A DNA stretch of 64,000 nucleotides from Mytilus edulis. Taxonomy: Eukaryota. A program made the position numbers and the translations under genes. Of this stretch, positions 242 to 62,887 are shown piece by piece (position 1 is the first letter of the stretch; each line of letters opens with the position of its first letter). A model generated the notes under the pieces. It saw nothing but the letters and a program-made list of their open reading frames with translations. It did not search any database and was not told where the DNA came from. The stretch spans positions 49,724,001 to 49,788,000 of the forward strand of contig NC_092344.1 in NCBI RefSeq assembly GCF_963676685.1, written 5' to 3'.

Positions 242-1125
242 TCTATGCACCCACAGAAAAACATGCATTTGGAGTGGAGAAGGTTTTACTGGTCGAAAGC
301 AAAGTTGAAAGAAACATAAACAGGCGTCGTGGTGGTGGATCCGTTTCTGTACTTGATGTTATTGATGCACAGACGAGCAGGATCAAGAGGAGTTTGGAAC
401 ATCTCATGGAATAGACAGTGAATTTATTACACACGGGTCATCTTCCGGTAGAGGACTGTCTGGGGTTACTGTTGGAGGCAGGACCTCTATATCAGGAACT
501 ATTAGAGGCCTTTCAGCTGTTTTGTCTCGTGCTTTATCTGACGATGACAGTAGCAGTAACTGTCATTATGGGTGTGGAGGCGACAGATTATGTAGTTCAG
601 GACATAAATGTTGACCTGAGGGTGGTAGCAGTTACTGCGTCGACATTTCATCTGGAAATATAATTGGTGCATCTAGATTGGCAGACTCTATTAGAAGGGT
701 AAACACGGGGTCAGAAATGATTAGAAGGTCATTATCTGGCTTGACCAGAGTTTAAAGTAATGATGGTCATTTATCATCTGGCAGCAGAATCGGTACATCT
801 GACTTGGCTAGAAATGTTGATCTCTCTCGCAGTTCTTATTTGGAAACTATAGGCAGTGGCTGTGGAGTTTCTGGTCATTCAGGTTCTGATATTCTTGACG
901 CAATCAGCTCTGGACCAGTTGAAATAGATACAGTTTCTTTCAGACGTAGTGGATCAGGTCGTACTTCTGGTTCAAGACTCGTTTCTCATTCAGTATTAGG
1001 AGGAAAAACTGATTGTAAAAAAAGACTGTTTTAGTGATGGAGATTGTCCAACGAATAAATACTGTGTTTTTGTTAATTGTCACATGATTTGCAGAAGAAG
1101 ACCGTCTAATGGATATACAGGATAA
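242..1125 (+). pseudogene. Copy A of the secreted Ser/Gly-rich WAP-like family: main coding exon, disrupted (signal-peptide exon lies upstream of the window)
   Basis: Acceptor tttttttacag| ends at 241, followed by (V)YAPTEKH as in the paralogs. Homology runs to CPTNKYCVFVNCHMICRRRPSNGYTG with TAA at 1123-1125. Lesions: indels near 369 and 392, in-frame TGA 612-614, TAA 753-755, and an extra A in the A-run near 1017-1023. Confidence 0.9.
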
Positions 1126-2853
1126 TAGCCTATCATCGAAATCCAGACTTTGAAATCGTATTTAAATTTTTTATACAATGAAATTTTGCAATCAGTTTGT
1201 GTTAACAGTGAGATTTTTTCGCATTACATCGTAAAATGGCGATAATTCAGGCTGAAAAACAAACTATACAAAAAAGAAATACAACATACAGACATATTCC
1301 CGTTTGAATGGTTTCACAATAGTAATTTTTGGGCCCTTTATACTTGTTGTTTGGTGTGAGCCAAGGCTCCGTGTTGAAGGCCGTCCATTGACCTATAATG
1401 TTTTACTTTTATAAATTGTTATTTGGATGGAGAGTTGTCTCAGTGGCACTCATACGACATCTTCCTGTATATAAGAACGGAGATACGAAGAAACGGTAAT
1501 ATATATGCTTATATCACGACGTTTCTGTCTTAAATTGAAGTGGCCGCAACCGTGTTCATTCTTAATATTTTAATGTAAGTTGTGTTTGATGATAATGCAT
1601 AACATCTATAAAGGTTATACACGGTTGCTGCCATTTTTATTTTTGACAAAACCATCTGAAAAAGATCTAGAGCCATATTATGACTTATTTGACAGATTTG
1701 TCATTTAAGCTTGAATTTGATCGTATAAAATAACTACATCAGTTTAAATCTTACAATTAAACATGTTAAACTAATTCAATCGACTGAAGTATACATTACC
1801 TTTCATCAGACGAACCTGTAGTTTGAAGCCAACATTGGCCCTTACCGGACCTACTCCTTTGTAAACAAAATAAGGTATGCGTTTCGTTTACAAAGACTCA
1901 TGTTACCATCAGACATTCCGACAAAATGAATTCAGAGTGGTCAAACTAATTAGTATTATAATACGAGCACTCAGTACAGTATTATGTACAGGAAAACATT
2001 AATATAATTGGACCTTTTTTTATTTGTGTGGCCATACACACTTTCAATTGTAATCATTATGACATAGGTCTAGTACACACGGAATGAGTATGATATTTTG
2101 ATATACCACTACTTAGGTTTCAAAGCTATAATACTATAGATTAAGCATGTGTCTCCTAGTAGAAAACAAATATTTCAGCGTTTTTCATTCAAACCATGAT
2201 TTCTTTGATAGAGAACATTTGTGAACAAGGATGTTACTAAAGCTCACTACATGGAAAAATTTCTTTTAACTTTGGTAATCACTCAAATAAGATTGAATTA
2301 ATAAAAATCATCCAGAAGATCGCAGATGAACCCGCAAACTTTCATCTTCAAAAGACAGAATGGCGCTCTTTTTAAAACTAGAATAAATGGATTTCGAAAT
2401 TTGCTGTAAAACACGACGTCTATACTTTTATGCTAAGCAGGATATGCTTACACTTTCTTTCACTTTTGAGGACATCCGAAAATTAGCTTGGTGATAGTGT
2501 ATACCTTTCTTGTTTGTAAGTGTTATTTTTTTTTTTATTAAACATTGTTTGTTTTGAATTATTTCAATGACTGCCTGGACTAATCTGTATTAATTCTACT
2601 GGTCATATATTGTGTTTAAACGTTTGATTGGATGTAGATTTATACAAAAAAGGTCCTTCCTGTCAAAATTGTCATTCATACCTTGGTTACATCATGACAA
2701 TTTCAACAGTGAGTAAGTGCAAAATTGTAAAGTCTTCTTTTTGAAAATAAAATATTGCATTCAGTTTTTGTTATTGTATAGATTTTCTGTTATTTCTTCA
2801 AAAATATTGATAAATAGTTATCAAAGGTACCAGGATCCGATTATAATTTAATA

Positions 2854-2895
2854 CGCCAGACTCGCGTTTTGTCTATATAAGACTCATCAGTGACG
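2854..2895 (-). ncRNA. Degenerate type I hammerhead motif (CUGAUGA family) in a retrozyme-derived fragment
   Basis: Minus strand reads cgtca-CTGATGA-gtct-tatat-agac-AAAA-cgcgag-TC-tggcg. GAAA has become AAAA, so it is probably inactive. Confidence 0.7.
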
Positions 2896-3359
2896 CTCAG
2901 ATCAAAATAGTTGTAAAGCCAAACAAGTACAATCCTTCGTCATTCGTCAGATCAAACTAATCAGAAAAATATAACAACATACACACATAAGTACAGATAT
3001 AAATAAAGATAACAAAAGCATACAGCAATTAAATAAAATGTGCCGTGATTTGTTTTAAATTACAGTAACTCGTAACAAACAAACAAAAACATAACATAAA
3101 CAAATAAAAACTTTTTTCTCCAAAGCAAAAACAATTATTCCTTGTTCTACATTCACTTGAATTCTAAAATAACTATAAAATTTCTTCAGATTTTTTTTAT
3201 GCTGGATACGTGCTGATAGCTGGACAAACGGAAAACCTACGATTTTCTTTACAAAAACAGAATACGTGAAAGATATAAGCATAAACATATTTGATTATAA
3301 AATGAGGTATACATGAAACCTGAAAATTTTAAAATGTAGAAATACAACACATTTGCTAT

Positions 3360-3690
3360 ATCTCACTAGTATGAGTTTTCATGTGTTTATCATATAGTTT
3401 TTTGTGTTACTAAACTGTTTACCACATACATCATATGTGCGAGGTTTTTATAAACTACGAGTTCTCATGTGTCTGGTGTCCCTAAACTGTAAACCACATA
3501 TATCACGGGTACGGGTGCGAGGTTCTCACCAGTATGAGTTATCATGTGTCTATCATAGAGTCTTGTGTCACTAAACTGTTATCCACAAACAAGGCATGCG
3601 CGATGTTTTCATCAGTATGAGTCCTCATATGTCTATCATAGTGTCTGGTGTCTCTAAACTGTCTACCACATGCATAGCATTGGTAAGATA
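3360..3690 (-). pseudogene. About four out-of-frame or decayed C2H2 fingers at the 3' end of ZNF gene 1
   Basis: Shifted frames read YQCYACGRQFRDTRHYDRHMRTH (canonical spacing), CLVCG*QFSDTRLYDRHMITH, and two further eroded fingers. Confidence 0.75.
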
Positions 3691-5270
3691 TTCACCTGCA
3701 TGAGTAAGTTTCATGTGTAAAAGACAGGTACTTTTGAGGCTAAACTCTTTCCCGCAAACATTACATGTGTAATTTAAAAGTTTATCATTTGTTACAGTAT
3801 TATGAGTACAACTTTGAGTTTTCATGTGTATACGGACCGTGCTCTTGTCCCTAAACCCTTTTCCACATACATCACATGTGTAAGGTTTTTCATCTGTATG
3901 AGTTATCATGTGTATATGAAGGGATCTGATGCTCCTAAAACCTTTGCCACATACATCACATTTGTAAGGTTTTTCACCTGTATGTATTCTAATGTGTGTG
4001 ATTAAATCCTGATTTGACTTAAATCCTTTACCACATACATCACAAATGTAAGGTTTGCGTTGCTCACCAGTATGAGTTCTCATGTGTCTAAGACAAGAAC
4101 TGTTCTTGCCAAACTCCTTACCACACACATCGCATTTGTAAGGTTTATCTCCAGTATGAGTTCTCATGTGTCTAAAATAAGAACTGTTGTTGCCAAACTC
4201 TTTACCACACACATCGCATTTGTAAAGTTTATCACAATTATTAATATTCGTGTGTGTATCAATGTTACATTTGTCGCTTAATCCTTTATCACCTGCTTCT
4301 CTGGTATTCGGTTTTTCATCAGTATGAGTTTTCATGTGTTTATTATGGGAAGTGATGTCACTAAACCCTATTTCACATACATCACATTTGTAAAATTCGT
4401 CACCAGTATGAGTTCGCATGTGTTTGTGGAAATTACTGTTGTTGTCAAACTCTCTACCACATATATCACATGTGTAACGTTTATTATATTTATAACCAGT
4501 ATGAATTGTCATGTGTTTATTGCAGCCACTTTTTCTACCGAAATTTTTACCACAGACATCACATGTGTAAGGTTTTTCACCGGTATGCATTCTTGTGTGT
4601 GCCGTTAAGGAACTGCAGACATTGAACCCTTTACCACATACATCACATATGTAAGGTTTTACACTAGTATGAGTTCTGTTATGTTTCTTATATGATTTAT
4701 AGTAACCAAATCCTTTACCACATAAATCACATGTGTAAGGTTTTTCACGCTTATCACCTGTGTGAATTCGCATGTGTCTGAGCAAGTTACTTTTGTGACC
4801 AAACCCTTGGCCACATAAATTACATGTGTAACGTTTTTCATCAGTATGACTTTTTTTATGTTTCGTACAGTTTCTGGAGTTAGTAAACCCTTGACCACAT
4901 ACACCACACGTGTAACGCTTTTTACCAGTATGAGTTCGTGTGTGTTTTTTTAAGGTTTTATCGAACCTAAAACTTTTACCACACACATCACATTTATAAG
5001 GTTTATCCTGTTTATCAACACTATGAATAATCATGTGTTGAAGGAAGCCTTTTTTGTCACTAAATCCTTTAACACACACATCACATGTGTAAGGTTTATC
5101 AGCAGTATGAGTTCTTGTGTGTATCGTATGAGATCTGAAGTTACTGAAAACTATACCACAGACATCACATGTGTAAGTTTTTTCACCCGTATCCATTCTG
5201 AAGAGTGATTTTTTTTTAAATTGGCGTGTACGTCTTACAGTCTGGTCATGTATCACATAAATGTAGATAT
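3625..5270 (-). CDS. Multi-C2H2 (Kruppel-type) zinc-finger protein, about 15-16 fingers (ZNF gene 1)
   Basis: ORF 3625..5280 has repeated Y-x-C-D-V-C-G-x3-F-x5-x-x2-H-x3-H units and TGEKPY-type linkers. The acceptor atgttttcag| puts the exon start at 5270, so the ORF's first Met is intronic. The first in-exon Met is at 5196. Upstream exons were not identified. Confidence 0.9.
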
Positions 5271-6500
5271 CTGAAAACATTAAAAAATATCATTTTAATT
5301 GCAGACAATTAAACAAATAAACAGAATACACGTGTTTACAAATTTATACTGCAACTGCCTGCGTTTATTTCCTGTAAATATAGTAACATAGCTATATTTT
5401 GTATAATGTCAATTTCATTATGGAATACTTTCTTCACAATCAGGGGTTCATTAATGGATGAGAACAAGTTTGACATTAATGTTACGATTTTAACAGCTGC
5501 CAATGTATTAATTTAAGTTGCAGTATAAAAACATTATTAGGTAAATGTCATACAAGTATGAACTTGTTTGTACTCGGCGCAAAACTGGGGAAGGGCATGA
5601 TAGAACCTCGCCCTTCCACAATTTCTCAGCCTCATACAACAAAGTTTATATTGTCCTGACATTTACCTAATATTGTATATATACATATACATATATGCAA
5701 ACATATTAAAACATAGATAAGACTAGTAGTGATGGGGTCAGTGATGCCGATGTCGCTGATCTGTTTTATCGACAATTTGTATGTATTTTTACTTTTATTG
5801 TACCGCCCTTGCGTTCCATACATTTTTATATAAATAGACACGACATTATCCCAGGTAACACGCATATTTATTTTAAAAGTATTCTTGCTTTAATTATAGC
5901 CTAGGTGTCTATATTGACACCGATATAAATAAAATAATATCTTTAAAGTAACATTATTGACTTACTAATTTACTTGTTGCATGTAGAGATTAATATAATA
6001 AGCAATTTTTCGAACGAGTTCACAACTTTTCCTACTAATGGTATCAAAGGCCGATAACCACAAATTGTTTACCTATGGAACGTCTAAGAAATAAAACAGG
6101 TAACAGTTAATTCTTTGCAGTGTCGGATTTCACTCAAAGTAAATATAATTTATATGTTATAAAAAATGTGGACAATTTCTTGCAAAAATGATAAGTTTTC
6201 CTTTCAAAGCGAGGCATTTACGCACTAAATATGTCGTTGGCAGATTATCATCATGATCATCATGATGCAATGTGGATTATTTTTATAATTGGTAAATAAG
6301 TTCCAGCAAATTTCGAATTTGTTGGCAATTGCACGAAGAAAATTCGAGACGATGGTTTACACCTACTTCATTATTGTGTTCATTTGTGTCTTACACTTTC
6401 GTCACAAAGTTTAATTTCCTTTTTATCATAGTAAAAAAAAAAAAATCATTTATACTGAGACTACTATAACAATTTAGTAGTCTCTGATTTGTACATTTTA

Positions 6501-10570: not shown

Positions 10571-10810
10571 TAAAAATGCTTTTTAATTAGAACGTTTATG
10601 TAATATTTATATGTATATATTTGCGGATATTATATATATACCATGTATACAATTTTGATTAACATTTCTATGAATATTTAACAGTATTATCATAGCTAGA
10701 AAGATACATCTTTCAATTGGACAGAAAATGCAATTTGTAATAATTCATCTTTGAATAGACTGATTTTGCAGTTGTTGGACTTGTTCTCATCATTATTTTC
10801 TTTTGATTAG

Positions 10811-12428
10811 ACTCGAAGCAACTGACAGAAATGAAAGTAAAGACGCCTGGACAGAAACAAATGATATTTCCTACAACGGAACATCAGCTACTTCTATGAT
10901 TGTCTCCATTGATCAGAATTCGGGTCCAATTACGGAAGAAATGAAAAGTAAAGACGTCTGTACAGACACAAATGAAATTTCCTACAACGGAACATCAGCT
11001 ACTTCCATGATTGTCTCCCTTGATCAGACTTCCGGTCCAATAATGGAAGAAATGAAAAGTGAAGACGCCTGTACAGAAACAAATGAAATTTCATACAACG
11101 GAACATCAGCTTTTTCCATGATTGTCTCCCTTGATCGGGCTTCCGGTCCAATTATGGAAGAAATGAAAAGTGAAGACGCCTGTACAGAAACAAATAAAAT
11201 TTCCTACAACGTAACATCAGCTACTTCTATGATTGTCTCCCTTGATCAGACTTCCGGTCCAATAATGGAGGATCGCTTAGTTAGCTTTCATGACAAAGGA
11301 ATTAGTTATATATGTAAAGTATGTGGCACTGAGTGTAGAAACAATGCAGATCTAGAGGAACATATAATAACTCACACTGCTGAAAACCAAGCTTTCAAAT
11401 GTAAAAAGTGTAAAAAAGAGTTTCGCGCATATAGTGTGCTACAGATGCATTTAAAGACACACGCTAGGAGTCATATATGTGAAAAATGTGGTATAGGTTT
11501 TCGTAAGGATGATGACTTAAAGACACACTTGAAAAGTCACTCTGAAGATAAGCCTAATGTATTTACATGTGATGTATGTGATAGAGGGTTTAGTGTGTAT
11601 AGATATCTACAGACCCACATGAGAACACATACTGGAGAAAAACCTTATAAATGTGATGTTTGTGGTAGAAGATTTGCTTGTAGTAATTTCAAACGAACTC
11701 ATGTGAGAACACATACCGGTGAAAAACCTTATGTTTGTGATGTATGTGGGAAAAGTTGTAGCCAGCTTAGTAGTATACAGAGCCACATGAGAACACATAC
11801 AGGTGATAAATCTTTTAAATGTGATGTATGTCGTAAAGTGTTTACTAACAAATGCTGCTTGAGGAGACATACAAAAATACACAGTGGTGAAAGACCTTTC
11901 AAATGTGATGTATGTGGCCATGGGTTTATTCAGAATTGTGACCTACAGAAACATATGAAAATACATACAGGTAACGAAGATAAACTGTATAAATGTGATG
12001 TTTGTGGGAAAGGATTTACTAACAAATGGTACTTGAAGAACCACACAGCAACTCACACTGGTGAAAGACCCTTCATTTGTGATGTGTGTGGTAATGGGTT
12101 TAGAAAAAATTGCGACATAATGAGACACATGAGAATACACACTGGTCACGTGGATAAAAGGTATAAATGTGAAATATGTGATAAAAGGTTTAGTAGGAAA
12201 CAGCACTTAACAACTCACATGAGAACACATACTGGTGATAAACCGTATAAATGTGATGTATGTGGGAGAGGGTTTACTACCAGTTGGTGCTTGAAGAGAC
12301 ACACAACAACACACACTGGTGAAAGACCTGTCAATTGTGATATATGTGGTAAAGGTTTCATTCAGAATTGTGACTTACAAAAACACATGAGAATACATAC
12401 TGGTGATAAACCGTTTAAATGTGATTGA
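10811..12428 (+). CDS. Multi-C2H2 zinc-finger protein, 13 fingers, with N-terminal acidic 37-aa tandem repeats (ZNF gene 2)
   Basis: ORF 10803..12428. Acceptor ttttcttttgattag| ends at 10810. The first in-frame ATG is at 10896 if no upstream exon is coding. There are 13 C-x2-C-x12-H-x3-H units, and the ORF stops inside a 14th (PFKCD*). AATAAA at 12515 and 12726. Confidence 0.9.
10828..11272 (+). repeat. Coding minisatellite, 4 x 111 bp (37 aa)
   Basis: Unit starts atgaaaagt at 10941, 11052 and 11163 (period 111). The first copy at 10831 lacks one A. Confidence 0.95.
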
Positions 12429-12653: not shown

Positions 12654-12843
12654 TACTAAATTATAATCCTGGTACCTTTGATAACTATTAACACAATTCC
12701 ATTAGAATATAACTTTTTAATGTATAATAAAAGGATTAAAGTCCCAAAAAGTGTAATTAAAGCAACTGAATCCTTAATGTTGTTGTATGGATGCGAGTCA
12801 TTTCAACAATAGATGTGATGAATTATCTTTTTAAGTGCAATCA

Positions 12844-13513
12844 TTATACCCCCGCTTTAAAAAAAAAGGGGGGGGGGTATACTGTTTTACCTCTGTCTGT
12901 CAGTCCGTCAGTCCGTCCATCAGTCCGTCCGTCCGTCAGTCAGTCCGTCCCACAAAACTTTCGTCACATTTTTCTCAGGAACTACACATCCACCCTTTCT
13001 GTAATTTGGTATCAACAATTATATATGTCAGCCATACCGTGTGATGCGTTTTCAGATTCATCACTTGACAACTTCCTGTTTACCGAACACTTGTATGATT
13101 TTACACATGATAGCCAAATTGAAAATTTTCGTCACATTTTTCTCAGGAACTACAATACAAGGATTTCTGAAATTTGGTTTCAGGATTTATATACATGTAA
13201 GTCAGCTTTACCGTGTGATGCGTTTTCAGATTCATCACTCGACAACTTCCTGTTTACCGAACACTTGTATGATTTTACACATGATAGCCAAGTTGAAAAT
13301 TTTCGTCACATTTTTCTCAGGAACTACAATACAAGGATTTCTGAAATTTGGTTTCAGGATTTATATAAGTCAGCTTTACTGTGTGATGTGTTTTCAGATT
13401 CATCACTCGACAACTTCCTGTTTACCGAACACTTGCATATTTTTACACTATTAATATTATCCACTTGCGGCGGGGGTATCATCAGTGAGCAGTAGCTCGC
13501 AGTTTCACTTGTT
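12844..13513 (+). mobile_element. HINE-type element with about three ~170-bp core repeats
   Basis: 5' inverted repeat tatacccc...ggggtata and a (CAGT/CCGT)n microsatellite. Core units start tcgtcacatt at 12961, 13129 and 13303. The 3' end has ggggtat, a stem-loop and cttgtt. Confidence 0.8.
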
Positions 13514-14059: not shown

Positions 14060-15243
14060 TCATGGTTTGTATCCTTTAGACGATCTCCTTCTACAAATCA
14101 TGCGACAATTAACAGAAGCACAGTATTTGTTCGTTGGACAATCACCATCACTAAAACAGTTGTTTTTACAATCAGTTTTTGCTCCTGCCATTGACTTAGA
14201 AACGAATCCCGAACCGGAAGAACGTGCTGATCCACTTCGTCTGGACGAAACTCTGTCTATAACATCTAGTCCACTACGTCCAGAAGAGATGGCGTCAAGA
14301 ATATCAGAACTAGCGGGTCAAGCTAGATGATGAACTTCTTATTATTTCTGACCCTGTGTTTCCACTTCTGATAGAGTCTGCCAATCTAAATGTACCAATT
14401 ATACTTCCAGAAGAAATGTCGACGCAGTAATTGCTACAGCCATCGTGTACACATTTATATCCTGAACGACATAATTTGTCTTCTCCACATCCATAATGAC
14501 AGTCACTGTCATCGTCAGAGAAAGCAGGAGACAAACCAGCTAAAGAACCTCAAATGGTTCCCGATACAGAGGTCCTGCCTCCAACAGTAGCCCCAGACAA
14601 TCCTCTACCAGAAGATGACTCGTGTGTTATAAATTTAATGTCTATTCCATGAGAAGTTCCAACTCCTCTTGATCCTGCTCGTCTGTTTGCATCAATAACA
14701 TCAAGTATAGAAGCAGATCCACCACCACGACGCCTGTTTATGTTTCTGGTAACTGTGCTTTCGACCAGTATAGCTTCTTCACACCATTTGTATCTAATGC
14801 ATGTTTTTCTGTGGGTGCATAGACTGTAAAAAAATATATCTGACATTTTATCTTCACAAATATACATGATCTTGAATCTATATACAGATATATGGATTTA
14901 TGGTATTTTTGCCAATAAAACATTTTCTACTATAATACAGGGACCGTACAGATTTAGCACTGTATAAAACGCATACCGTTTTGAAAGCTATGAAGGACTC
15001 CACATTACAAAAATGAAACAACATGAACCAGAAAACCATTTTTTTTCAAGTTTTTCTATTAATATTTACCAAATACTTCGTATTGAATGACATTGTTTCG
15101 TTTGTAAAGCTTGAGTATTTATCTCAACATCGAAAACACATTAAAATATAGCCTATAAATCTACAAAAAGCAAATCGAATATTACCGGCTAGTGTCACTG
15201 TGGCCAATGCCAACGAAAAGAAAAAGGTCTGAAATCTCATCAT
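14060..15243 (-). pseudogene. Copy B of the secreted WAP-like family, disrupted
   Basis: The signal exon 15243..15186 (MMRFQTFFFSLALATVTLA) is intact. The main exon 14823..14060 has a -1 frameshift near 14773 and a TGA at 14552-14550. A net 113-bp deletion relative to copy C creates a TAG at 14312-14310. Confidence 0.9.
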
Positions 15244-36606: not shown

Positions 36607-38081
36607 TCATGGTTTGTATCCTTTAGATGGTCTCCTTCTACAAATCATGTGACAATTAACAGAAGCACAGTATTTGTTCGTTGGACAATCGCCATCACTA
36701 AAACAGTCGTTTTTACAATCAGTTTTTGCTCCTACCATTGACTGAGAAACGAATCCTGAACCGGAAGAACGTGCTGATCCGCTTCGTCTGGATGAAACTG
36801 TATCTATAACATCAAGTCCACTACGTCTAGAAGAGATTGCGTCAAGAATATCAGAACCTGTATGACCGGACACTCCACGGCTACTACCTAAAGTGTCCAA
36901 ATGAGAACTTCTAGCCAGACCGGATGAACCAATTCTTCTGCCAGAGGATAAATGACCATCATTACTTGAAACTCGGGTCAACCTAGATGATGAACTTCTA
37001 ATCATTTCTGAGATTGCGTTACCTCTGTTTATAGAGTCTGACAATCGTGATGTACCAATTATACTTCCAGAAGAAATGTCGACGCAGTAACTGCTACAAC
37101 CATCATGTACACATTTTTGTCCTGAACGACATACTTTGTCTACTCCACATCCATAATGACAGTTACTATCATCGTCAGATAAAGTAAGTGACAAACCCAC
37201 TGATGAGTCTCTTATGATTTCAGATGAAGAGGTCCTGCCACCAAAAGAGCCCCCAGATAAACCTCTACTGGCTGATGACCCGCGTGTTATAAATTCATTG
37301 CCTATTCCATGTGATGTTCCAACAGCTCTTGATCCTGCTCGTCTATTTGCATCAATAACGTCTAAAACAGAAAGTGATTCGCCACCACGACGCCCGGTTA
37401 TGTCTCTTCCTAGTGTGCTTTCGACTACTAAAGTCGTCTTACCTCCACGTGTAACTGATGCATGTTTTCCAGTTGGTGCATATACTGTGAAATAGATATT
37501 TGACATTATTGCACAAATATACACGAGACAGTTTTAATCTATATATTAATATAAGGACATCTGGTACTTTTGCTTATAAGACATCAATCCAATTTGAATC
37601 AAATGACAGGAATGTTTACAACTGTAGGAACCTAACGATTTCAGCACTGTAGAAATCTCATACTGTTTAGCAAGATAAAAATGTAAATAAGTTGAGCATG
37701 ATCTGCTTGCCTTTTTGGCGCACCTGTGTGATTGTGTTGCTCAGTTTTTAATGTTTTTATGAAGGGTTTTATGTACTATTATTTGTCCTCATTACACAAT
37801 ATTAAAACATATGAATTAGTAAACCATTCATTTAAATTTTTTCTTTAATAATTTACTAAAATAAATACAATTTGGAATGATAAATTCATATGTACTGAAA
37901 TTATCTTCATTTAAGATTTTTGTTTGTTGAGGTATTTGGATTTTTTTTTGTATCAAAACATCGAAAATCCTTTTGTAGAATAACCTATGAATTTTGAGAA
38001 GGCAAATCGAATATTTCTCTTACCGGCTAGTGTTACTGTTGCCAATGCCAACAGAAATAAAACGGTCTGGAATCTCATCAT
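36607..38081 (-). CDS. Copy C: secreted Ser/Gly/Arg-rich protein with two 6-Cys WAP-like modules, 311 aa; join(38081..38024, 37484..36607)
   Basis: A 58-nt exon encodes the signal peptide MMRFQTVLFLLALATVTLA. A phase-1 intron (gtaag...tttcacag) joins it in frame to YAPTGKH..., open to TGA. AATAAA near 36547-36552. Confidence 0.92.
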
Positions 38082-38766
38082 CTCTAACAATTCTGAAATT
38101 GATAAATTATGATTTTCAAAGTCATGGAAAATTATAATCAACACGTGGCTCATACAAAACAGTGAATTTACTACTGAAGACATTAAAGACAGTAACATGT
38201 TAGTGACAAACCTCGGTTAATTTACGAAATTAACAAACGAGGAAAATTCATTTAAGCAAAATATATAAATGTCTACCTATGTTTTAGAAACGGATAATTC
38301 TTTTACATTGTTTAATAAATAAAAAAAATATATGTATTGAATTTTTTTTTAAACACCATCTTCTATATTCCAAAGAATTATTTCAATTGGATTTACATTT
38401 CCTATAGATCTTGTGTTATTATATGTAAAAAAAAATTCACTAAAATAAACAAAAAAGTTTGTCTTTTATCTTTCAGTGATTTAAAACAATTAATAAATGT
38501 TGAACAATGTAAACTTTCTATATTCTCTTCGTTTTCCAATGTTTCATTCTTACAAGGGAACACCTACTGATTTTTTTTGCTGTAATCTTTAGCTACTTTC
38601 GAAAATTCAAAAAGTAAAGAATCATTAGTTCCCAATAAACTTTATTAATATTTTTTCTAATTATTTAATTATTTAATAACTTATTTTCAGTTGATCTCTC
38701 TCACTTTTGCATTATTGTTGTTTACATTTATTAATAGTTAATATATATTATTACATAATTTCTTAC

Positions 38767-38898
38767 CTGTGTTTGAAGTAATTGCAATAATGTCTAGTGA
38801 ATAATGTTTTACTGCTTCAGAATCGTTCTTTTATACCCTTTTTCATTTTTTTTTCTAAAAGTTGACATACACACAAGGAAATGTTTAACTGAACCGCA
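38767..38898 (-). promoter_or_regulatory. Non-coding exon 1 and TATA promoter of copy C
   Basis: Donor acag|gtaaga (exon ends 38767). TATAAAA at 38835-38829. AGGAAATGT at 38876-38884 and AACCGCA at 38892-38898. Same order as in copies D and E. Confidence 0.75.
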
Positions 38899-40392
38899 CA
38901 TGATGCATTCGTTAATTATAGATGAAACTTAAAATGTCACCATGTCATTTTTATATGGAACTGTGAAATATGTATATCTAACAAATGCACTAAGGGTTCA
39001 TAACACATTGTGTTTCCTTCTATAGCTACAACAGACATATTTGTTATGACATCATAATAAATGTTTGTATTATAAATCATTGTTTGACCGATTATTAATG
39101 TTTTCATATAAACACATTATATATTTGGTAGTAGCCAGAGACTTGTACTTTTTGAAAACAAATAAACTAACGCCCTTTATTTCCTTATAGACAAAATACA
39201 TTCTTTTCTTAGAATTGTTAAGAAACCGCTGCTTTGTAATTTATTTACCTCACAATATAAAACTCATCTAAGTTTGAAGGATTTCAATAAAATTTGTAAG
39301 ACACGCATCTTGGCTGTTTCAGATTCACTAGACGTATTCGAATCAATCAAAACAGTAAAAAGGGAAGATCATGATCAATTTTGAAATTATGAAACTAAAG
39401 AGGATGAAAAACCAAAAACTCGAACGTAGTTGCGTCAAATCTATTTAATGCCATCTTGATAGCTTTATTATTTTAATCAGTTTTACCTTTTTTTAGTGAA
39501 ATGTATATTTTTCAGACCAGAATCTTTCATCTAAACAAAAACATTTGCCTTCTGATAATAGGTTACTTTCGAAGATAAACCGTTTACAAGCAAAAAAAAG
39601 CTAACGGTTTACCTTCGAAAGATACCAAAAAGGACATAAGTCGAAAATATAACGACAATCCCCTGATAAATATAAATATCAACACTTATTAGAAGACGGA
39701 CAGAACAGTTTACAAAACACAGATCACCAAAGACTAGGCAACAATAATCAAACAAAAAACTGGTAATCTTGTCACTGATTCTCCCGCGCTTCAGCTATTG
39801 TGAACAATAAGATGTTAGATCTTTTCTTACTTAAAATAAAACCTGTTTTACCCTGACATTCATTTAGAGCTTTATATAATGTGCGTGTACCTGTCAATTA
39901 TCGACGACTTTATGTTACTTTATATATGTCTTTAGGTTTTTTGTGTCGTTTGGTTGTTATTCATTCACATGCAACCCGCGTCTCCTTTTATTTAAAAATT
40001 TCTCAATGCGTGTTTTTTTTTCTTTCTCAACGTTATAATTCAAATGATGCTGTTGCTGTTTCCAGTTTTACCAAGCTAATACTTTTAATTCGATACGCAA
40101 GACGTGCGTTTTATCTGCAAGCTTTGTACTAAAATTAAAGACAAGATTAGATACAAAGTGTACAAACTTAAGTATAAGATAATTACACTTCAAAATCAAT
40201 TAATTACAGTGAAACCTATTTTAACCGAACTTATTAGGGACTTCAGATTTTGTTCGGTTATGGCCGAAGTTCGGTTTCATCAAGTTCACAATGCAAATAA
40301 TTTGATATCACAGTGCTATACTTTTTGGACCTTTTGGATTATAGCTCTTCATCTTTTATATAAGCTTTGGATTTCAAATATTTTGGCCACGA

Positions 40393-48750: not shown

Positions 48751-48769
48751 CAAGTGTTACGTATTTTCT

Positions 48770-50228: not shown

Positions 50229-52019
50229 TCATCCTGAGTATCCTTTGGATGGTTTTCTTCGGCAAATCCTGTGACATTTAACAGTGGTACAGTATTTGCT
50301 TGGTGCACAATCTGTATCAGTATGACATAGTTTTCTGCAATTACTGAGGTCTCCTACTACTGACTGAGATACGATCCTTGAACCAGATGATCCAACTGAT
50401 CCTCCTCGTCTAGAAGAAATTGTGTCCAATGCATCCATGCCACTACGTCTAGATGTAATTGTGTCCAATGCATTAATGCCACTTCGTCTAGCTGAGATAG
50501 TGTCAAGAATATCAGAACCTGTATGACCAGACAATGTACGACTGCTACCAATAGTTTCCAAATGAGCATTGCTAGATAGATCCAAACGTCCTGTCAAAGA
50601 CTGACCAGAACCAATTAGGCTACCAGATGCTATTTGTACGCAATAGCTGTTGCATCCTTCGTGGACACATTTCTGTCCTAACCCACATAGTTTATTGTCT
50701 CCACATCCATAATTGCATTTCAAACCATCAATGCTTGACAGTCTTGATAAGTCAGATGACGAACCTCTAATAATTTCTGAAACTTTATTTCCCCTTCTTA
50801 TAGACCCCGATAATCCAGATTCACCAATGACACTCCCAGATGAAACTTGGACACAATAACTGTCACATCCATCGCGTACACATTTATGTCCTAGGTTACA
50901 TAATTTATCTACTCCACACTCATAATGACAGTTTCTGTTTATACCATCATTGCTTGCTATACCAGCAGAATTCTGAAATGAAGAGCTTCTTATAATTTCA
51001 GAGACAGCTGAACTTCTTCTGTCAGATCCTGCTCGTCTATTTGCATCCATTACATCCAATACAGAAACTGAGTCTCCAAGAGGACCTCCAATGTCTCTAC
51101 CAACTCCATTGTCAAGCTGTAAAACCTTGTTCACTCCATGTAGACCTAATTTCTTTTCTGTAGGTGTATAGGCTGTAAAGAAATATATGAGGTTTGTAAA
51201 ACTTATATCAAACAAATACTGTACACCAACTTATTTTCGCGGATACTTTATTTCGCGTTTATCACCAGCTAGTCAATTTCGCGGCGATTTAATTTCGCGA
51301 TTTCTTAAATTTACTTGATGTGGTTTGATAAGGAAATATCTAAGTTATACATATTCGCGACGATTTAATTTCGCGTTCGTTTTCTTCTCGCGAAAGTCGC
51401 GAAAATAAATCGCTCGCGAAATTAAGTTGGTTTACAGTATTTTAAAATTCTTTGAAAGAATACAGAAAAATCATCATATAGTGCCTTTTCTTATTATAAA
51501 TCTAATTCCTAATAATATATTTGCAGATCCATAAGTGATAAATTTAAATATCATTGATTACACATGTTTATAAATTAACTGCAAAACTTTCATTTATTTA
51601 AAAACACTTCGGACATTTGGGATCCTCAGTTTTCTTTAAATTCAATCTTGATTCGGCATTATAACATGTATAACATTTCTATTCGAGCATTCCTGATGAG
51701 TCTTTTGTAGACGAAGCACGGGTATTTATTATCGAATTATAAGCGTGGTATCTTTGTTGGGTAACTAGAACTTGATCTTAACTATGTCAGAAAACTTTGT
51801 TTATAAAAAGCTTATCAAAGGTGCCAGACTTATAATTTTGTACACCAGACGCATGTTTCTTCCTTCATCATAAGTGTTATCAGAGATTATGGTATCACAA
51901 CAGTTTGAAAGCCAAATAAAAAATAATAATCTTGAGAAAGCGAATATAAGTTAATGCTTACCAGCCACTGACATTATGGTCAATAACATTGACAATGACA
52001 TAGTTTCAAATCTCATCAT
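50229..52019 (-). CDS. Copy D: secreted Ser/Gly/Arg-rich protein with three 6-Cys WAP-like modules, 333 aa; join(52019..51962, 51172..50229)
   Basis: A 58-nt exon encodes MMRFETMSLSMLLTIMSVA. A phase-1 intron (gtaagc...tttacag) joins it in frame to (A)YTPTEKK..., open to TGA. Confidence 0.92.
51219..51437. mobile_element. TA-target MITE (Tc1/mariner-like) in intron 2 of copy D
   Basis: TIR ctgtacaccaacttattttcgcg / cgcgaaattaagttggtttacag with TA on both sides and internal tttcgcg repeats. Absent from copy E. Confidence 0.85.
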
Positions 52020-53017
52020 TTTCAAGAATCTGAAATATACAAGATAAGCATGTTTTAAAACATCTGTTTTCAAAAATAACTAAAAATCATATAACAAAAA
52101 AGGTTGCTAATTATAATTTAGACCTGCCAGCATTTAACTTCAAATTACTTAAAATTTCGAAATTATTAAATCAGATTGTGCATGTTCTATTCTTAATAGC
52201 TTGACAAAACAACAAAACAGGGATAAAGAAAGTAACCGTTTCAAAGGTAAGTCAACAAGAACAATATAAAAAACGAAACAGGGGGAAATAAATTCCAACC
52301 AAAAAAATTTTGTCAAGCGAATTAACGGGAATAAATGTATGTCCAAAGTTATTGTAGATCCTCATTTATGTAGTAAAATACGGAGTTTAAATTTGTAAAA
52401 AGTATCTGATGGAAATATATTTCAAGCTAAAATGATTGAAATCATTAAAATAATGCAAATTTAAGTTTAAACTGAAAGATTGCAATTGCATTGCATATAT
52501 CAGTTTAAAATCTGACATAGTTCTAACAGATATGGTTTTTTTTAATATTTTAATTATTTTCTGGTATTCACTAGAATTTTTTGAAAAAAATATCAACTTC
52601 ATACTTTAAAGTCCAAAATTAAGTTCGGAAATTAATTAAGAAACGCGTGTTTTTTTTTTAATATAATATACGTTAAGCTGTAGTTCGGTACTTAAACAAA
52701 CTTGCAAATTTGTCACTGACTATAAACGTACGTAATGTCTAATTTAATTTCATAAACATTGTAAACTAATCTGTATAAAATGTTATGATATTTCTATTTG
52801 CAGACAAAAATATTTTAAAGAAAAAGTGTGTTTCTAGAATTTCATAATTAATTGTTTTTCAAAATATTATCCTTTTGGAATTTTTGTTTGTATGGTGTAT
52901 TATTAAAGTCATCATGTTATTAAACAATTACTACGTACCAATGTATAAGCCTTCCATATTTAGTTAATTTATAAAGATAATAAAGAGTCAAGTTGTCTTT
53001 GAAACTAAAGGAATGTT

Positions 53018-53161
53018 AAATTGAAAAGAAATATGTGTATAAATTGTAAAGAAATATGTGTATAGATTGAAAAGAAATATGTGTATAAATTGAAATGAAA
53101 TATGTGTATAAATTGAAAAGAAATATGCGTATAAAATGAAAAGAAATATGTGTATAAATTG
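53018..53161. repeat. Minisatellite, 6 x 23 bp, in intron 1 of copy D
   Basis: Unit aaattgaaaagaaatatgtgtat. Copy E has a single diverged copy at about 62683. Confidence 0.95.
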
Positions 53162-53202
53162 TGATTTCTAAGTAGCTTAACACTTAAACTTAGTAATCTT
53201 AC

Positions 53203-53333
53203 CTTAATTTAAAGTAGTTATCAGTTTTTCGAATGAATAAATAATGTTTCCCATTTCAGAACTGTTCTTTTATACCATCTCAATTATTTGTTTATTGTTT
53301 GCATACAAACAAGGAAATGTATATTAAACCACA
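53203..53333 (-). promoter_or_regulatory. Non-coding exon 1 and TATA promoter of copy D
   Basis: Donor taag|gtaaga (exon ends 53203). TATAAAA at 53274-53268. AAGGAAATGT at 53311-53320 and AACCACA at 53327-53333. Confidence 0.75.
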
Positions 53334-56300
53334 AATGATGAATTATGTAATCATTGTTTTGCATTCATTTAATGTCAAAGCAAATTTATAAGATATAATT
53401 GCACACAATATGCAAATTAAAATAAACTATATGTACTTAATGGGTTCAAATGCACATACTATTTCCTTTTGTATTACACTTGGTGTTTTTGGTTACGTCA
53501 TAGTAGATATATGTACTTCAAAATGATGTTTTGATGTATTAGTGATGTACATAAATACACATATTATGTATAAGATAGTAGTCAGAGACTTGTACCGTTT
53601 AAAAAAAAAAAACCGTACTGTTTCTATTTCCTCAAAAAATAATTAACCAACTGTATTTTTCATTTAGATATATATAATTATTTATGCTTTATAAGATATT
53701 TGAATAGACGTCTTCAATCGTTTATAATACTTATGTGATTTTATCGCAATTGGTCATCTTTAAACAATAAGAACAAGGGTCAAAGTGAAGAAAAAACACA
53801 TAACAACAGAAACACCCATGTTAACACAATCGCATGATTGATTCTCACAACTACCTTGTTGATTAATTTCGTCTCCGCTGAAACTTTATTTTTCGATAAA
53901 TGTTATGTAAAACAATGTTGAAACAATTAGAAACATTCATTGGTAGATAGTCAAAGTAATGAATTTACAAAGGGTTTGTTTCATTGGAGCTTGACATATA
54001 TTATTGGCCACTTATTTGTACCATAAAGTGACCGCTAGATGAAGTGTAGCCTTGCATTGAAATGATGTGTTGTTAAGTATACAACACATAGTTTTTGATG
54101 ATGTTTTCTCAATAATTTACTCATTTCATTGTGAATAATTGTCAATGACACTAAAATAAGTAAAAAATGTATAACTAAACTGAATGAATATCTTCATATA
54201 TCATATGATACATATTTTTAAAATTTTCTTATTTTAATTAATTATCCTAAGGCTTTTAGTTATTGGATATCTGGTGATATATATATACGTATGATATTGA
54301 TTTGGTATGTTAAGATGCGTGGTACTTTAGCTATTTTGTCTAGCTTATAATTAAGTATGACTGATGACACGTGTTCTGTCTGATCAGCGATGAAGCTTGT
54401 ATCTGTTTGTTGTGCGTATTGCACATTTTATTTTCTTTAATTACAATTTTGTATTGTTTCTTATGTGACAGTTAATAAAACTTGTTGGTTTTCTGATAGA
54501 TTTTTATGCAGGGTAATCTTACTTGGTGTAGTTCAATGGCTTTGCTTCCGTTTGTTATACTTTTTATAAAACAGCATAGGTTTTTTTCTCGAGTCTTCTT
54601 GTTTTATTTCGACGTCAAAGGTCCTAAAATGCATGACTTATATTTTTTGAGTTTCAATTAGATTGCCTTTTGTAGTATGACTCATGATTATTTTGTTATG
54701 TAATTAAACATTGTTAAACGATCATGTGTCTTGTAGTTTGTCGATTCAAGACTTTTTAATACACTTTTGTATCTTTTTTTTAAATACAAAGGGGTAAAAT
54801 ACCAATGAGTATGCAAATACTATAATGAAAAGAAATTATAATTTTTAATAGAAGTAGTTAAAATCATGTCTTGTTTTTTTTTTTCGTTTATTTTCTTTTA
54901 CTTTTTTGTATTCACATAACGACAAACATACATATTTAGGTACTCATCGAGCTGTACAAGAAGAACTGTCTTATAAAACATGTAAACACAACAAATAAGC
55001 AAAATAATTTATGATGTTAAAGTTTGTAATTTGAAGAATATAATTTTCAAAGGTGTTAATAAGTGAAATAATGTTGCGTTGTTTGAAAGATTGAAAACCA
55101 CCTTAACTTACTTGCGATAGCTGTGAAAAAAAACCAAAATAAAAATATCTGACGGAAAGCACATCAGATCAGTATAAAGCACTAAAACTATAACAAAAAG
55201 AAACAGCTACTTGAAGCTAGACCAATGCCGAAATTCAATTGATGAAAAACGTGGAAAAACTGCACGACGGTCTAATCATAACTGAACGGCACATTTATTT
55301 TGAGATTTTTTAATTTGTTTAAATATATATTCATAATTAAAAATGCTAGCATATTTTGGAGAGACAAATAAATTATGGATTTCCATTCCTGTTTTTTCAT
55401 CTGTATACATGTGTAACCATTCAGTTGACTATCAACTTATCACTAAATATATTCTATATTATACAGAAAGTACAAAACATCAGTTGTCTAAGAACCCCAA
55501 TTATGCCCAATATTTTTCATGAGTTCCAATATACATCCAGTTTTTTGGGGATAATCTTAAACTTAAACCAAACTGTATGAGGCTCTGGTTCCCTGATCCT
55601 ATGTTTCCTGACATATATATGGCCAGGAAGGCTAACGATTTCATTTCAAGATATTTCATCAACCTTACTATAGCTTATCTGTCACACATGAGGTCAATAA
55701 TTAAGAAGACTCAAGAGTCTTATCAAATTTTGTCAAACTGTATAATGCTTCGTTTTAGGTCCTTATTGCAGAAATCCTCACATGGCTTTTTTAAACGGAG
55801 AATAGCATTACAAACAAACAACTCATTCGGTGTGGAAGCATAATCGTAGTAAATATATCCAGAAAAAAGAAAAAAGGAAATACATATTCAAGATAATTAT
55901 TTGAAACCAGACATTTTATAATATGCACAACTATACAAAGCAATTGATACCTTTAATATCTATCTTTTTAAACCAACAGCAGTTTCCTGTTTGTTTTTAC
56001 TTACATTCACTTGCATTAGTTTTACTAAATTCACTTGTGTACCTCAAACCTTCACAAAATAACAACAAATGGCAATTGTTTGTTTTAGAAGTAGATTTGA
56101 CCTTGACTTTTTACCTTTTAACATAAAATAAAATAAAATAAATGGGAGTTGCCTCTATTTTTATATGTCTTCAATCAATACAAGTTTAATTATAAACTGA
56201 AATATATGTTTTTTGTTGTCGTTTTTATGTTTTTTAGAATGGTGTCGGATTTTTTTTATAATTTGAATGCGAACGTCTTCAAAAATTATAATCGGTCAAC

Positions 56301-56589
56301 TATTTGTTTCTGACACAAAGAAGAAGACGTTAGTACTAACTCACAAATGACAATATGTTCCTGGTATTTTCCGGGGATCATAACCACCATGTTTATAAAA
56401 ACTATAATATAATTCAGTTCACCTTCCACTTACTTATTGTTAGTATGCTTATATTTCTGATATTTGAATTATTTATAATAAACATTTTTTAAGAAATTGG
56501 ACAATTGTAATATATATAAAATATAATCGTACGTCTCGCATTTATTGTGTCGTTTTATTTAGGGTTATATTGTCCAAAACAATATCGAT

Positions 56590-60228: not shown

Positions 60229-61759
60229 TCATCCTGAGTATCCTTTAGATGGCCTTCTTCTGCAAAGCCTGTGACATTTAACAGTGGTACAGTATTTGCT
60301 TGGTGCACAATCTGAATCAGTATGACATAGTTTCCTACATTCACTGTCGTCTCCTACTACAGACTGAGAAACGATCCTTGAACCAGATGATCCAACTGAT
60401 CCTACTCGTCTAGAAGAAATTGTGTCCAATGCATCCATGCCACTACGTCTAGATGTAATTGTGTCCAATGCATTAATGCCACTTCGTCTAGCTGAGATAG
60501 CGTCAAGAATATCAGAACCTGTGTGACCAGAAATTGAACCACTGCTACCAATAGTTTCCAAATGACCATTGTTAGATAGACCCACACGTCCGGTTAAAGA
60601 CTGACCTGAACCAATTAGGCTACTAGATGATAATTGAACGCAATAGCTGTTGCATCCTTCGAGGATACATTTATGTCCTGATGCACATAGTTTATTTTCT
60701 CCACATCCATAACTGCATTTTGAACCATCAATGCTTGACAGTCTTGAAATTCCAGATGATGAACCTCTAATAATTTCTGAAACTGTATTTCTATTTCCAC
60801 TTCTTATAGACCCCGACAATCCAGATTCACCAATGACACTTCCAGATGAAACTTGGACACAGTAACTGTCACATCCATCGCGTACACATTTCTGTCCTAG
60901 GTTACATAATTTATCTACTCCACACTCGTAATGACAGTTTTTGTTTATACCATTATTGCTTGCTATACCAGCAGAATTCTGAAATGAAGAGCTTCTTATA
61001 ATTTCAGAGACAGCTGAACTTCTTCTGTCAGATCCTGCTCGTCTATTTGCAACAATTACATCCAATCCAGTAAGTGACTCTCCACGACGAACTCCAATGT
61101 CTCTACCAACTCCATTGTCAAGCTGTAAAACCTTGTTCACTCCATGTAGACCTAAATTCTTTTCTGTAGGTGTATAGGCTGTAAAAAATGTACGAGCTTT
61201 GTGAAAGAAGTAATAGCTGTTTTAAAATCGTTTTAATGCGTGCCTGTTTAATGCGAATATAGCAAAACTATCATCTTTATATTGTGTTATTTTCATTATA
61301 ATGTTTATACAGGTTTATCAATGAGAAGTTAGGTTGACATCGATATTGTCATATTCATAAATTAACTGCCAAAATTACATTAAAAAACTTCGAACATCTG
61401 TTGACCTCAAATTCAAAACTTGATTTTAGCATTTAGATTTGAGCTTTTCGGCTGGGTCTTTTTTAGACGATATGTGGGTCTTGTGTACAGACTTAAAAGT
61501 GTGGGATCTTTGTCGAATCGTATCTTAACTACGTCAAACATATTTGTGTAAAAACGAAGCTCATCAAAGGTACCAAACTTAACATAATTGTGTACGCCAG
61601 ATGTCGTTTACAAAATATGCATCCATAATGCTGGTATCAAAACTGTTTGAAAGCATAATAAAAGAAAATGATAGAAAAGGCGAAAATAACAAAATGCTTA
61701 CCAGCTACTGACATTATAGTCAACAACATTGACAATGACATAGTTTCAAATCTCATCAT
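60229..61759 (-). CDS. Copy E: tandem paralog of D with three WAP-like modules, 335 aa; join(61759..61702, 61178..60229)
   Basis: A 58-nt exon encodes MMRFETMSLSMLLTIMSVA. A phase-1 intron joins it in frame through (A)YTPTEKNLGLHG into ORF 60229..61140. Confidence 0.92.
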
Positions 61760-62753
61760 TTTCAAGTATCTGAAATATACAACATAATAGATATAGGAAG
61801 ATAGCATTTTTTAAACATCTGTAAAAAAAATAGCCAGAAATCATGTAATAAAAAAAAGTGCGGGTTATAATTTAGACCTGCAAGCATTTTACTTCAGATT
61901 ATTTAGAATTTTACTTAGAAATTAATAGATCCGATTGACCAAACTTATTGAAGACAGCAATTCTCATTTATGTAGTAAAATATGAAGTTTAACTTTGTAA
62001 AATATATGTAATGGAATAATATTTCAAACTCAAATAATATAAAGTGATCCATTAAATAACAAATGCAAATACAAGTTTAAACTAAAAAGATTGGCAATGC
62101 ATTGAATTCACCTGTTTAAAATCTGACATAGTGTTAATAGATATGACTTTTCTTCAATAGCAAAATCATTTTCCGGTATTCTCAAAAATTCATTTAAAAA
62201 AGAAAAAAACTTTAACTTCATACTTTTAAGTGCAACATTTAGTTCAGGGATATACAAATTCAATAAATAAACACTTGTGTTTTTTTAACATAATACACGT
62301 TCAGCCGTAGTTAGGTATTCAAAAAAACTTACTTCAAAAATACGTACATGTAATGTTATTGAATTTCATAAACAATTTAAACTGATCTGTATGATATTTC
62401 ATGATATTTCTGTTTAAACACAAAACATATTAAAGAAAAGGTGTTATTTTCTAGAATTCAATGATCTTGCTAATTTCATAATTATTTTGTTTTTCAAAAT
62501 TTTATCCTTTTGAAATGTTTATATGTATGGTGTATTATTAATGTCATCATGTTATAAAACAATTACTACGAACCTATTTATAAGCCTTGCATATTTAATT
62601 GATTTCAATCGATTTTCTCAATTTCTATTTAGTTTTTAAGATAATGAAGAGGCAAGTTATCTTTTGAAATTAAAGTAATGTTAAATTGAAAAGAAACAGG
62701 TGAACAAATTATAAATGATAATTATCTTAACACTGACACTTTAAAAATCTTAC

Positions 62754-62887
62754 CTTATTTTGAAGTAGTTATCAGTTTTTCGAATGAATGATTAATGTTT
62801 CCTATTTCAGAAATGTTCTTTTATACCATCTCAATGATTTTTTTTTTTTAATTGCATACAAACAAGGAAATGTATTTTTAAACCGCA
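62754..62887 (-). promoter_or_regulatory. Non-coding exon 1 and TATA promoter of copy E
   Basis: Donor taag|gtaaga (exon ends 62754). TATAAAA at 62825-62819. AGGAAATGT at 62865-62873 and AACCGCA at 62881-62887. Confidence 0.75.

Follow-up and report, generated by a model that had tools for sequence, protein, structure and literature searches.

What are the small cysteine-rich modules encoded by a cluster of secreted-protein genes in the mussel Mytilus edulis, where did they come from, and what do the proteins that carry them do? The cluster lies in a stretch of 64,000 nucleotides on contig NC_092344.1 (positions 49724001 to 49788000), hereafter called the window, in whose numbering all coordinates are given unless contig positions are stated. 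The original prediction, made from the letters of the window, described five copies (A to E) of an unrecognized family, three of them intact genes and two of them pseudogenes, whose secreted products alternate low-complexity Ser/Gly/Arg linkers with small modules of six cysteines. Our analysis has largely shown that these modules, or knots, are WAP domains without the first and sixth of their eight cysteines (C1 and C6), and it places the five copies within a larger array at whose edge a gene with a complete WAP domain is still found.

Six-cysteine modules and the WAP domain

Each module is 26 residues long, and its cysteines follow the spacing C-x3-C-x5-C-x5-C-x4-C-x3-C, which was invariant across ~150 modules from 80 family proteins of five species. 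Well-predicted proteins have exactly six cysteines per module and not the eight that define a WAP domain (PF00095). The Pfam WAP profile was matched at E ≤ 0.01 by 22 of 31 members (best, 4.6e-6), with the match covering only profile positions 10 to 39 of 41, that is, everything after C1. Relative to the gathering cut-off of 20.8 bits, gene C scored above (22.3 bits) and genes D and E scored below (17.1 and 19.3 bits). Because the eight-cysteine test fails and the Pfam cut-off is reached only by C, we file the modules as a WAP-derived variant and not as strict WAP members. A Dumpy DPY module had matches in only 2 of 31 members.

A complete WAP domain is present within the family itself, in g19, the outermost member of the array (locus L015:3672-5117, minus strand; contig positions 49858671 to 49860116), which RefSeq annotates as a "mucin-21-like" protein of 505 residues. 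Its large exon opens with the family Y-x-P-x-x-K motif, continues with an eight-cysteine WAP domain (41.8 bits, profile positions 1 to 41), and then runs through four six-cysteine modules set in "IIRGSSS"-type linkers to the C-terminal module and tail typical of the family; g19 also has the promoter block described below. This layout of WAP domain, linkers, and six-cysteine modules recurs in the Mytilus californianus ortholog of g19 (731 residues, "hornerin-like," with more modules) and in the distant relatives P0092 and P0111. Judging from the full WAP domain of g19 and from the modules, linker motifs, and promoter that it shares with the rest of the array, the family shares a common ancestor with bona fide WAP proteins. 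Since g19 keeps a canonical WAP domain in front of the same knots, the family arose from a WAP gene by losing the WAP domain and by gaining and losing internal modules, and g19 looks like the transitional form from which it arose.

Comparison of the C-terminal module with the local eight-cysteine WAP domains gave P = 6e-6 (hhalign, profile against profile) and placed the six cysteines on C2, C3, C4, C5, C7, and C8, leaving a gap of one residue at C6. In an AlphaFold2 model, the C-terminal module of D forms a β-hairpin with a predicted local distance difference test score (pLDDT) of ~90, and its top three matches among 48,161 PDB representatives were half of SLPI (Z = 3.5; 37 residues aligned, root-mean-square deviation of 4.0), elafin (Z = 3.3), and omwaprin (Z = 3.2), with nawaprin lower in the list (Z = 2.0). 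The internal module, modeled alone (mean pLDDT, 76), gave four matches at Z ≥ 2, the first three being omwaprin (2.7), SLPI (2.4), and elafin (2.4). Both structural lists are headed by the same three WAP proteins, in agreement with g19 and the sequence evidence. The ESM Atlas gave scores of 0.75 to WAP clusters, which we treat as a lead only.

Several results weigh against this origin. The internal module aligned weakly with WAP domains (P = 0.006, hhalign), and Foldseek found nothing significant for it in the PDB. The structural Z-scores are low (2.4 to 3.5), which is expected because only ~35 residues are involved. A sequence search of the PDB was of low yield, with matches only at E > 3, elafin among them.

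Side by side with the WAP proteins SLPI, elafin, omwaprin, and nawaprin, the mussel modules have the same loop lengths from C2 to C8, the same D-x-D-C-P...K-x-C core in the C-terminal module, a predicted fold with a β-hairpin for which SLPI, elafin, and omwaprin are the best (low-scoring) structural matches, and, in the array paralog g19, the full domain. They differ in having six cysteines and no N-terminal arm, in a C2-C3 loop of 3 residues compared with the 8-residue inhibitory loop of elafin, and in being repeated and set in long disordered Ser/Gly/Arg linkers. In canonical WAP domains the cysteines pair as C1-C6, C2-C7, C3-C5, and C4-C8, as established for SLPI and elafin. If the mussel modules follow this pairing, the loss of both C1 and C6 would have removed exactly one disulfide and kept the other three pairs.

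Gene models, array, and promoter

The window is AT-rich (GC, 0.25 to 0.37) and contains three mutually similar long minus-strand open reading frames (ORFs) at 36607-37524, 50229-51215, and 60229-61140. With these as queries, tblastn returned exactly five paralogous loci in the window (E = 1e-64 to 1e-84 between subfamilies): A at 232-1122 on the plus strand and B at 14063-14867, C at 36610-37524, D at 50232-51215, and E at 60232-61206 on the minus strand. C, D, and E are intact, whereas A and B are pseudogenes with frameshifts and stops, as originally predicted. The predicted exon architecture was likewise read directly in C, D, and E, each of which has a GGTATAAAAGAAC box upstream, a short non-coding exon 1 with the donor AAG/GTAAGA ~65 nt after the TATA box, a signal-peptide exon, a phase-1 intron, and a single large exon preceded by a canonical AG acceptor. 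The 58 nt given for the signal exon proved to be its coding part (19 codons and the first base of the next), the full exon 2 measuring 68 to 69 nt. A hydrophobic signal peptide of 19 residues, with small residues at positions -1 and -3, begins each product and bears out the proposed secretion. The products are 311 (C), 333 (D), and 335 (E) residues long, as predicted, and when each exon was checked separately, the translations were equal to the RefSeq models XP_071124370.1 (C), XP_071124394.1 (D), and XP_071124382.1 (E).

All features of these three genes are on the minus strand. In gene C (g13), the promoter block and non-coding exon 1 occupy 38767..38900, with TGCGGTT at 38892-38898, TTCC 18 nt later, and TATAAAAG at 38828-38835; the 3' end of exon 1 (38767) was read in the sequence, and the 5' end is inferred, not mapped. 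Exon 2 (38024..38092) has its ATG at 38081 and encodes the 19-residue signal peptide (residues 1 to 19 of XP_071124370.1) plus one base before a phase-1 donor. The large exon (36607..37484; 291 codons and the stop) corresponds to residues 21 to 311 and includes an internal module at 37084-37161 and the C-terminal module at 36640-36717. An AATAAA signal follows at 36547-36552.

Gene D (g14) has its promoter block and exon 1 at 53203..53335 (TGTGGTT at 53327-53333, then TTCC, then TATAAAAG at 53267-53274; exon 1 ends at 53203), its signal-peptide exon at 51962..52029 (ATG at 52019), and a large exon at 50229..51172 with three modules at 50853-50930, 50640-50717, and 50262-50339. Gene E (g15) is built in the same way, with the promoter block and exon 1 at 62754..62887 (TGCGGTT at 62881-62887, then TTCC, then TATAAAAG at 62818-62825; exon 1 ends at 62754), the signal-peptide exon at 61702..61769 (ATG at 61759), and a large exon at 60229..61178 whose three modules lie at 60859-60936, 60640-60717, and 60262-60339. 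Directly after exon 1 of D, intron 1 holds approximately five tandem copies of a ~26-nt unit (53040-53170, minus strand), of which the equivalent part of E has one copy. The last codons of D (50232) and E (60232) are exactly 10,000 bp apart. An assembly artifact was considered and rejected, as the D/E alignment, at 73 to 88% identity, has an offset that moves from 10,020 to 9,550; D and E are therefore a real, diverged duplication, and the exact spacing is a coincidence.

Both broken copies retain recognizable parts. The large exon of A (g11; 242..1125, plus strand) belongs to the two-module subfamily and was recovered as three tblastn high-scoring segment pairs in different frames. In three-frame translation, the reading frame shifts at least twice and is interrupted by two or more in-frame stops, one of which falls inside a Cys module; the internal module has lost one cysteine. 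The promoter and signal exon of A lie 0.14 to 2 kb before the window start (locus L018, 1381-1516 and 3180-3263). In B (g12), the large exon (14060..14823, minus strand) is disrupted by a frameshift early on, by an in-frame stop, and by the loss of ~40 residues together with a frameshift. The 58-nt coding part of its signal exon is intact (15186..15243, minus strand), with a GT donor after it; a search upstream of this exon found no promoter block anywhere in the window.

The five copies are a cluster only as far as the window reaches. A six-frame search of the whole 1.37-Gb assembly with the large exon of gene C returned 45 matching stretches, all within contig positions 49649103 to 49859987, which group into 19 tandem loci (g01 to g19) spanning ~211 kb (contig positions 49649103 to 49860140). 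Copies A to E are g11 to g15, with ten loci upstream of the window and four downstream. Six genes have one module (g03 to g09 except g06; one with a stop), seven loci have two (g01, g02, g06, g10, A, B, and C), and five genes have three (D, E, and g16 to g18), with g19 as the single divergent member. The layout of non-coding exon, signal exon, and large exon is common to all members. In a maximum-likelihood tree of the large exons, the three-module clade is separated with support of 100/99 and the one-module clade is nested within the two-module group, where B stands next to C and A stands with g01, g06, and g10; the window thus straddles the border of two subfamilies. The birth-and-death pattern inferred from the window holds for the whole array, in which 3 of 19 loci are broken (g09, A, and B) and module number ranges from 1 to 3, with more in g19.

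Unrelated genes are interspersed among the copies. Two ORFs encode multi-finger C2H2 zinc-finger proteins (Pfam E ~1e-90), and a third, of 545 residues, has a weak B-box match and may be TRIM-like; the three lie at 3625-5280 (minus strand), 10803-12428 (plus strand), and 25546-27183 (minus strand). An ORF of 234 residues at 12791-13495 (plus strand) has three internal repeats of ~50 residues and no obvious relation to the family, and it may be repeat derived. An Rfam scan of the window at gathering thresholds found no RNA families. Approximately 190 kb before the array, a further gene with WAP modules was found at contig positions 49458155 to 49460086 (plus strand), with another stretch at 49479211 to 49479693 (plus strand). 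This gene, similar to the sequence P0093, goes by the RefSeq name "prion-like-(Q/N-rich) domain-bearing protein 25." It encodes an N-terminal eight-cysteine WAP domain followed by ~12 modules of identical six-cysteine spacing with short linkers, and it suggests a wider neighborhood of WAP-derived genes.

Alignment of upstream regions identified one promoter block at 18 of 19 loci (all but B), g19 included. The block comprises TTCATCATTTG(C/T)GGTT, then TTTCCTTGT, whose TTCC lies 17 to 18 nt after the start of TG(C/T)GGTT, and a TATA box ~60 nt after TG(C/T)GGTT (59 to 66 nt in the 16 blocks scanned), which is followed by the exon-1 donor at about +62 to +66. TTCC was at 17 to 18 nt in 15 of the 16 scanned blocks (not in A), and g03 and g16 likewise have both motifs. 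Identity between subfamilies was 69% in the 70 nt before the TATA box, 57% in the next 130 nt upstream, and 52% in intron 1. Because 18 of 19 loci share this conserved TATA promoter block, its presence suggests that the genes may be coregulated and coexpressed in one cell type. The C/T change in TG(C/T)GGTT falls on a degenerate position. We take TG(C/T)GGT to fit the RUNX consensus and TTCC to fit an ETS core on the other strand; the pair is a lead only and a possible clue to the expressing cell type.

The mature proteins consist of 17 to 20% Ser, 13 to 15% Gly, and 7 to 11% Arg and have isoelectric points (pI) of 8.8 to 9.7. They contain 3 to 7 Tyr (~2%), no Trp, and no N-glycosylation sequon. 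The modular architecture of six-cysteine modules in Ser/Gly/Arg-rich linkers was described correctly at the outset, but the linkers are not plain low-complexity sequence. They are predicted to be disordered (pLDDT < 50 in 248 of 333 residues of D in the AlphaFold2 model), and in 31 members from five species, several linker and end motifs hold invariant positions: Y-x-P-x-x-K at the mature N terminus, S-x-S-V-L-D-x-I-D-x-N-R-R in the linker, the stretch before the last module with two further LD-x-I...R-R units, and the tail C-R-R-x-x-S-x-G-Y. An "IIRGSSS" unit before each internal module gives a repeat of ~71 residues, and D and E have one extra 13-residue unit ending in RR. Ratios of nonsynonymous to synonymous substitution (dN/dS) between pairs of paralogs were 0.23 to 0.70 overall, 0.05 to 0.52 in modules, and 0.25 to 0.81 in linkers. 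These values point to purifying selection that is strongest on the knots, with no sign of gene-wide diversifying selection. A mild enrichment of R-x-x-S (z ~2.5) has no clear meaning.

Relatives were recovered mainly from the genus Mytilus. A word-indexed search returned 65 homologs, all from M. edulis, M. galloprovincialis, M. trossulus, M. californianus, and M. coruscus. Among 1.84 billion cluster representatives, an exhaustive search with a HMMER profile gave only 18 matches at E ≤ 1e-3, of which those with names were from Mytilus except for one weak match to a fish protein. More distant relatives occur on a few Logan and ENA contigs, and a word-based homolog search with one of them, P0092, returned only P0092 itself. 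The homologs are named "uncharacterized" or "hypothetical" or carry the automatic UniProt name "WAP domain-containing." The view that the family was unrecognized therefore has to be given up, as its modules are WAP derived and its genes are in RefSeq, as uncharacterized proteins, and in UniProt under that automatic name.

Function of the secreted products

The role that we favor, with a probability of roughly 0.4, is that of a component of an extracellular material (byssus, periostracum, or shell matrix, for example) that the foot or mantle secretes. The linkers, which are flexible and basic, could act as extensible spacers and bind electrostatically, the disulfide knots could serve as stable interaction or protective nodes, and the invariant Tyr-bearing ends (Y-x-P-x-x-K at the N terminus and G-Y near the C terminus) are candidate cross-linking handles. 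Protein size, conserved flexible linkers, variable module number, and conserved knots together suggest an endogenous partner over an arms race. Small Cys modules have precedents in the elastic matrices of molluscs, namely mfp-2 and lustrin A. In Mytilisepta virgata, WAP-like proteins are foot specific and show enrichment in the mantle rim (PMC5549309), and the genes with high expression in the foot of Perna viridis include two with WAP domains (PMC7971044). Because the C2-C3 loop is short, as it is in omwaprin, canonical elafin-type protease inhibition would be less likely than an antimicrobial or protective contribution.

Other observations count against a structural role, at least in its better-known forms. 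A DOPA (3,4-dihydroxyphenylalanine) adhesive of the mussel foot protein (mfp) class, for which we took Tyr/DOPA at roughly 10 to 30 mol%, usually with Lys, as the criterion, was rejected given ~2% Tyr, and in so far the proteins are not classical DOPA adhesives. An acidic secreted phosphoprotein (a Fam20C-type substrate) was rejected as well: the pI is basic, and S-x-E/D sites are depleted relative to shuffled sequences (z = -0.9 to -3.3), so that the proteins are not typical acidic matrix phosphoproteins. Finally, the RUNX-plus-ETS-like motif pair in the promoters would favor a role in defense.

Such a role is the alternative that holds up best, although we regard it as tentative. The proteins would be soluble effectors of the crustin or waprin type, secreted by hemocytes or mucosal epithelia, in which the cationic C-terminal three-disulfide knot and the Arg-rich tail attack or bind microbes and the Ser/Gly/Arg region is comparable to the Gly-rich or Pro/Arg-rich part of type II/III crustins. 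WAP ancestry and the structural resemblance to omwaprin would suit an effector of this kind. Omwaprin is antibacterial and does not inhibit proteases, and the C2-x3-C3 loop of the mussel modules is short like that of omwaprin, the loop of elafin being longer. The basic pI would also suit it, as would the lineage-specific tandem expansion with pseudogenes and the RUNX-like and ETS-like motifs in the aligned promoters, Runx being tied to hemocyte proliferation and differentiation in the Pacific oyster (PMC11430624). Charge is divided, since the C-terminal knot of D has a net charge of +3 before its RRK/RRR tail but the knots of gene C have only +1 and -1. The pattern of selection is less favorable: the knots are the most conserved part (dN/dS, 0.05 to 0.5), and no pair has a gene-wide dN/dS above 1, unlike many mussel antimicrobial peptide families. 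At 230 to 335 residues (up to 731 in g19 orthologs), with long conserved linkers, the proteins are also large for such effectors.

It is less probable, and we think unlikely, that the products are polyprotein precursors, from which prohormone-convertase-type cleavage at conserved Arg-Arg pairs would free a C-terminal knot peptide of ~50 residues and perhaps also short acidic peptides of 11 residues, cut out of the 13-residue repeat. Two Arg-Arg pairs, one following the LDVIDAN motif and the other in front of the SGS stretch, show little or no variation in the 31 members (a third site is variable), RRR or RRK follows the last cysteine, and the 13-residue unit ending in RR is present one to three times, depending on the paralog. 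However, all members of the one-module subfamily have Gly-Arg at one site, and 5 of 31 members have another residue in place of the second Arg of the first site. The sites lack Gly amidation donors and a furin-type R-x-K/R-R context, and the stretches between them, internal knots included, are conserved and under purifying selection.

That the intact-looking copies are unexpressed relics or over-predicted annotation models is highly improbable: 3 of 19 loci are plainly broken, but 15 further paralogs besides g19 keep open frames of 225 to 315 codons with dN/dS well below 1, cysteine spacing is invariant in the ~150 modules of five species, splice sites and promoter are conserved, and distant relatives on contigs of ~1 to 1.5 kb look spliced because signal peptide and mature chain share one ORF.

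Comparison with known systems and significance

Among known mussel proteins, mfp-2 is a byssal-plaque protein of tandem six-cysteine EGF modules and is rich in Tyr/DOPA. It resembles the array family as a secreted mussel structural protein of repeated small six-cysteine modules and provides a precedent for the multi-module proteins g19 and P0093; it differs in that the EGF fold is not WAP derived and in that the array family has ~2% Tyr. Crustins are arthropod proteins of ~100 to 200 residues with a full eight-cysteine WAP domain (type II adds 4 Cys, for a total of 12). They have a signal peptide, a low-complexity region, and a C-terminal WAP-type knot, are cationic, and form multigene families, and the mussel family is alike in these respects. 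The mussel proteins do not qualify as crustins, however, as their C-terminal module has six cysteines and their low-complexity region is rich in Ser/Gly/Arg. No sequence relation beyond the WAP domain was seen, the Pfam match is marginal, and the likeness is one of architecture only.

Lustrin A, from abalone nacre, is, like the family products in their favored role, a mollusc extracellular matrix protein. It joins Cys-rich modules to elastic linkers rich in Gly/Ser, a basic stretch, and, at its C terminus, a WAP-like domain. Its Cys-rich repeats are a different module, its linkers are Pro-rich, and here too the likeness is architectural only. Perlwapin, also from abalone nacre, is described as having several WAP domains (PMC5854119). 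Neither lustrin A nor perlwapin has detectable sequence homology to the mussel family outside the WAP signature. The Mytilus WAP proteins in the literature are perlwapin-like shell proteins with eight-cysteine domains, one of which has three full WAP domains (PMC3896809), and represent a different family. A literature search by accession, locus identifier, peptide string, and name found no paper on the array family, and a search for six-cysteine or three-disulfide WAP variants found general reviews only. The family is thus unstudied, although its genes are already annotated and its domain class is already known; the new points are that the modules can be placed as a WAP remnant with three disulfides, that a transitional gene stands at one edge of the array, that the full array has 19 loci, and that the promoter is shared.

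Mussel secretions, including byssus, periostracum, shell matrix, and mucus, are models for biomaterials and for invertebrate immunity, and many unnamed lineage-specific families are left among them. For one of these, descent from WAP by the clean loss of one disulfide can be proposed, with the transitional gene still at the array edge, and the array offers a natural series of one-, two-, three-, and multi-module proteins in which to ask what a three-disulfide WAP remnant can do. As the genes were annotated and the domain class was known, this is a useful placement and not a surprise of principle. It is possible, though doubtful, that a WAP gene of the Mytilus lineage shed its canonical domain and gave rise to ~18 disordered Ser/Gly/Arg-rich proteins, with three-disulfide WAP remnants to hold them together and invariant ends that bear Tyr, and that these form an unnoticed class of building blocks of mussel secreted material (byssus, periostracum, or shell), perhaps as an elastic matrix that self-associates or is cross-linked. 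In mammals, the semenogelin/REST genes of the WFDC locus have a conserved signal exon and a fast-changing large exon, and their secreted products are disordered and repetitive and have lost the WAP domain. The parallel is evolutionary only, as the lineage is unrelated, the products have no Cys knot, and their function in the seminal coagulum is irrelevant to the mussel family. If the building-block reading is true, the rise of the mussel family would parallel the rise of semenogelins from WFDC genes.

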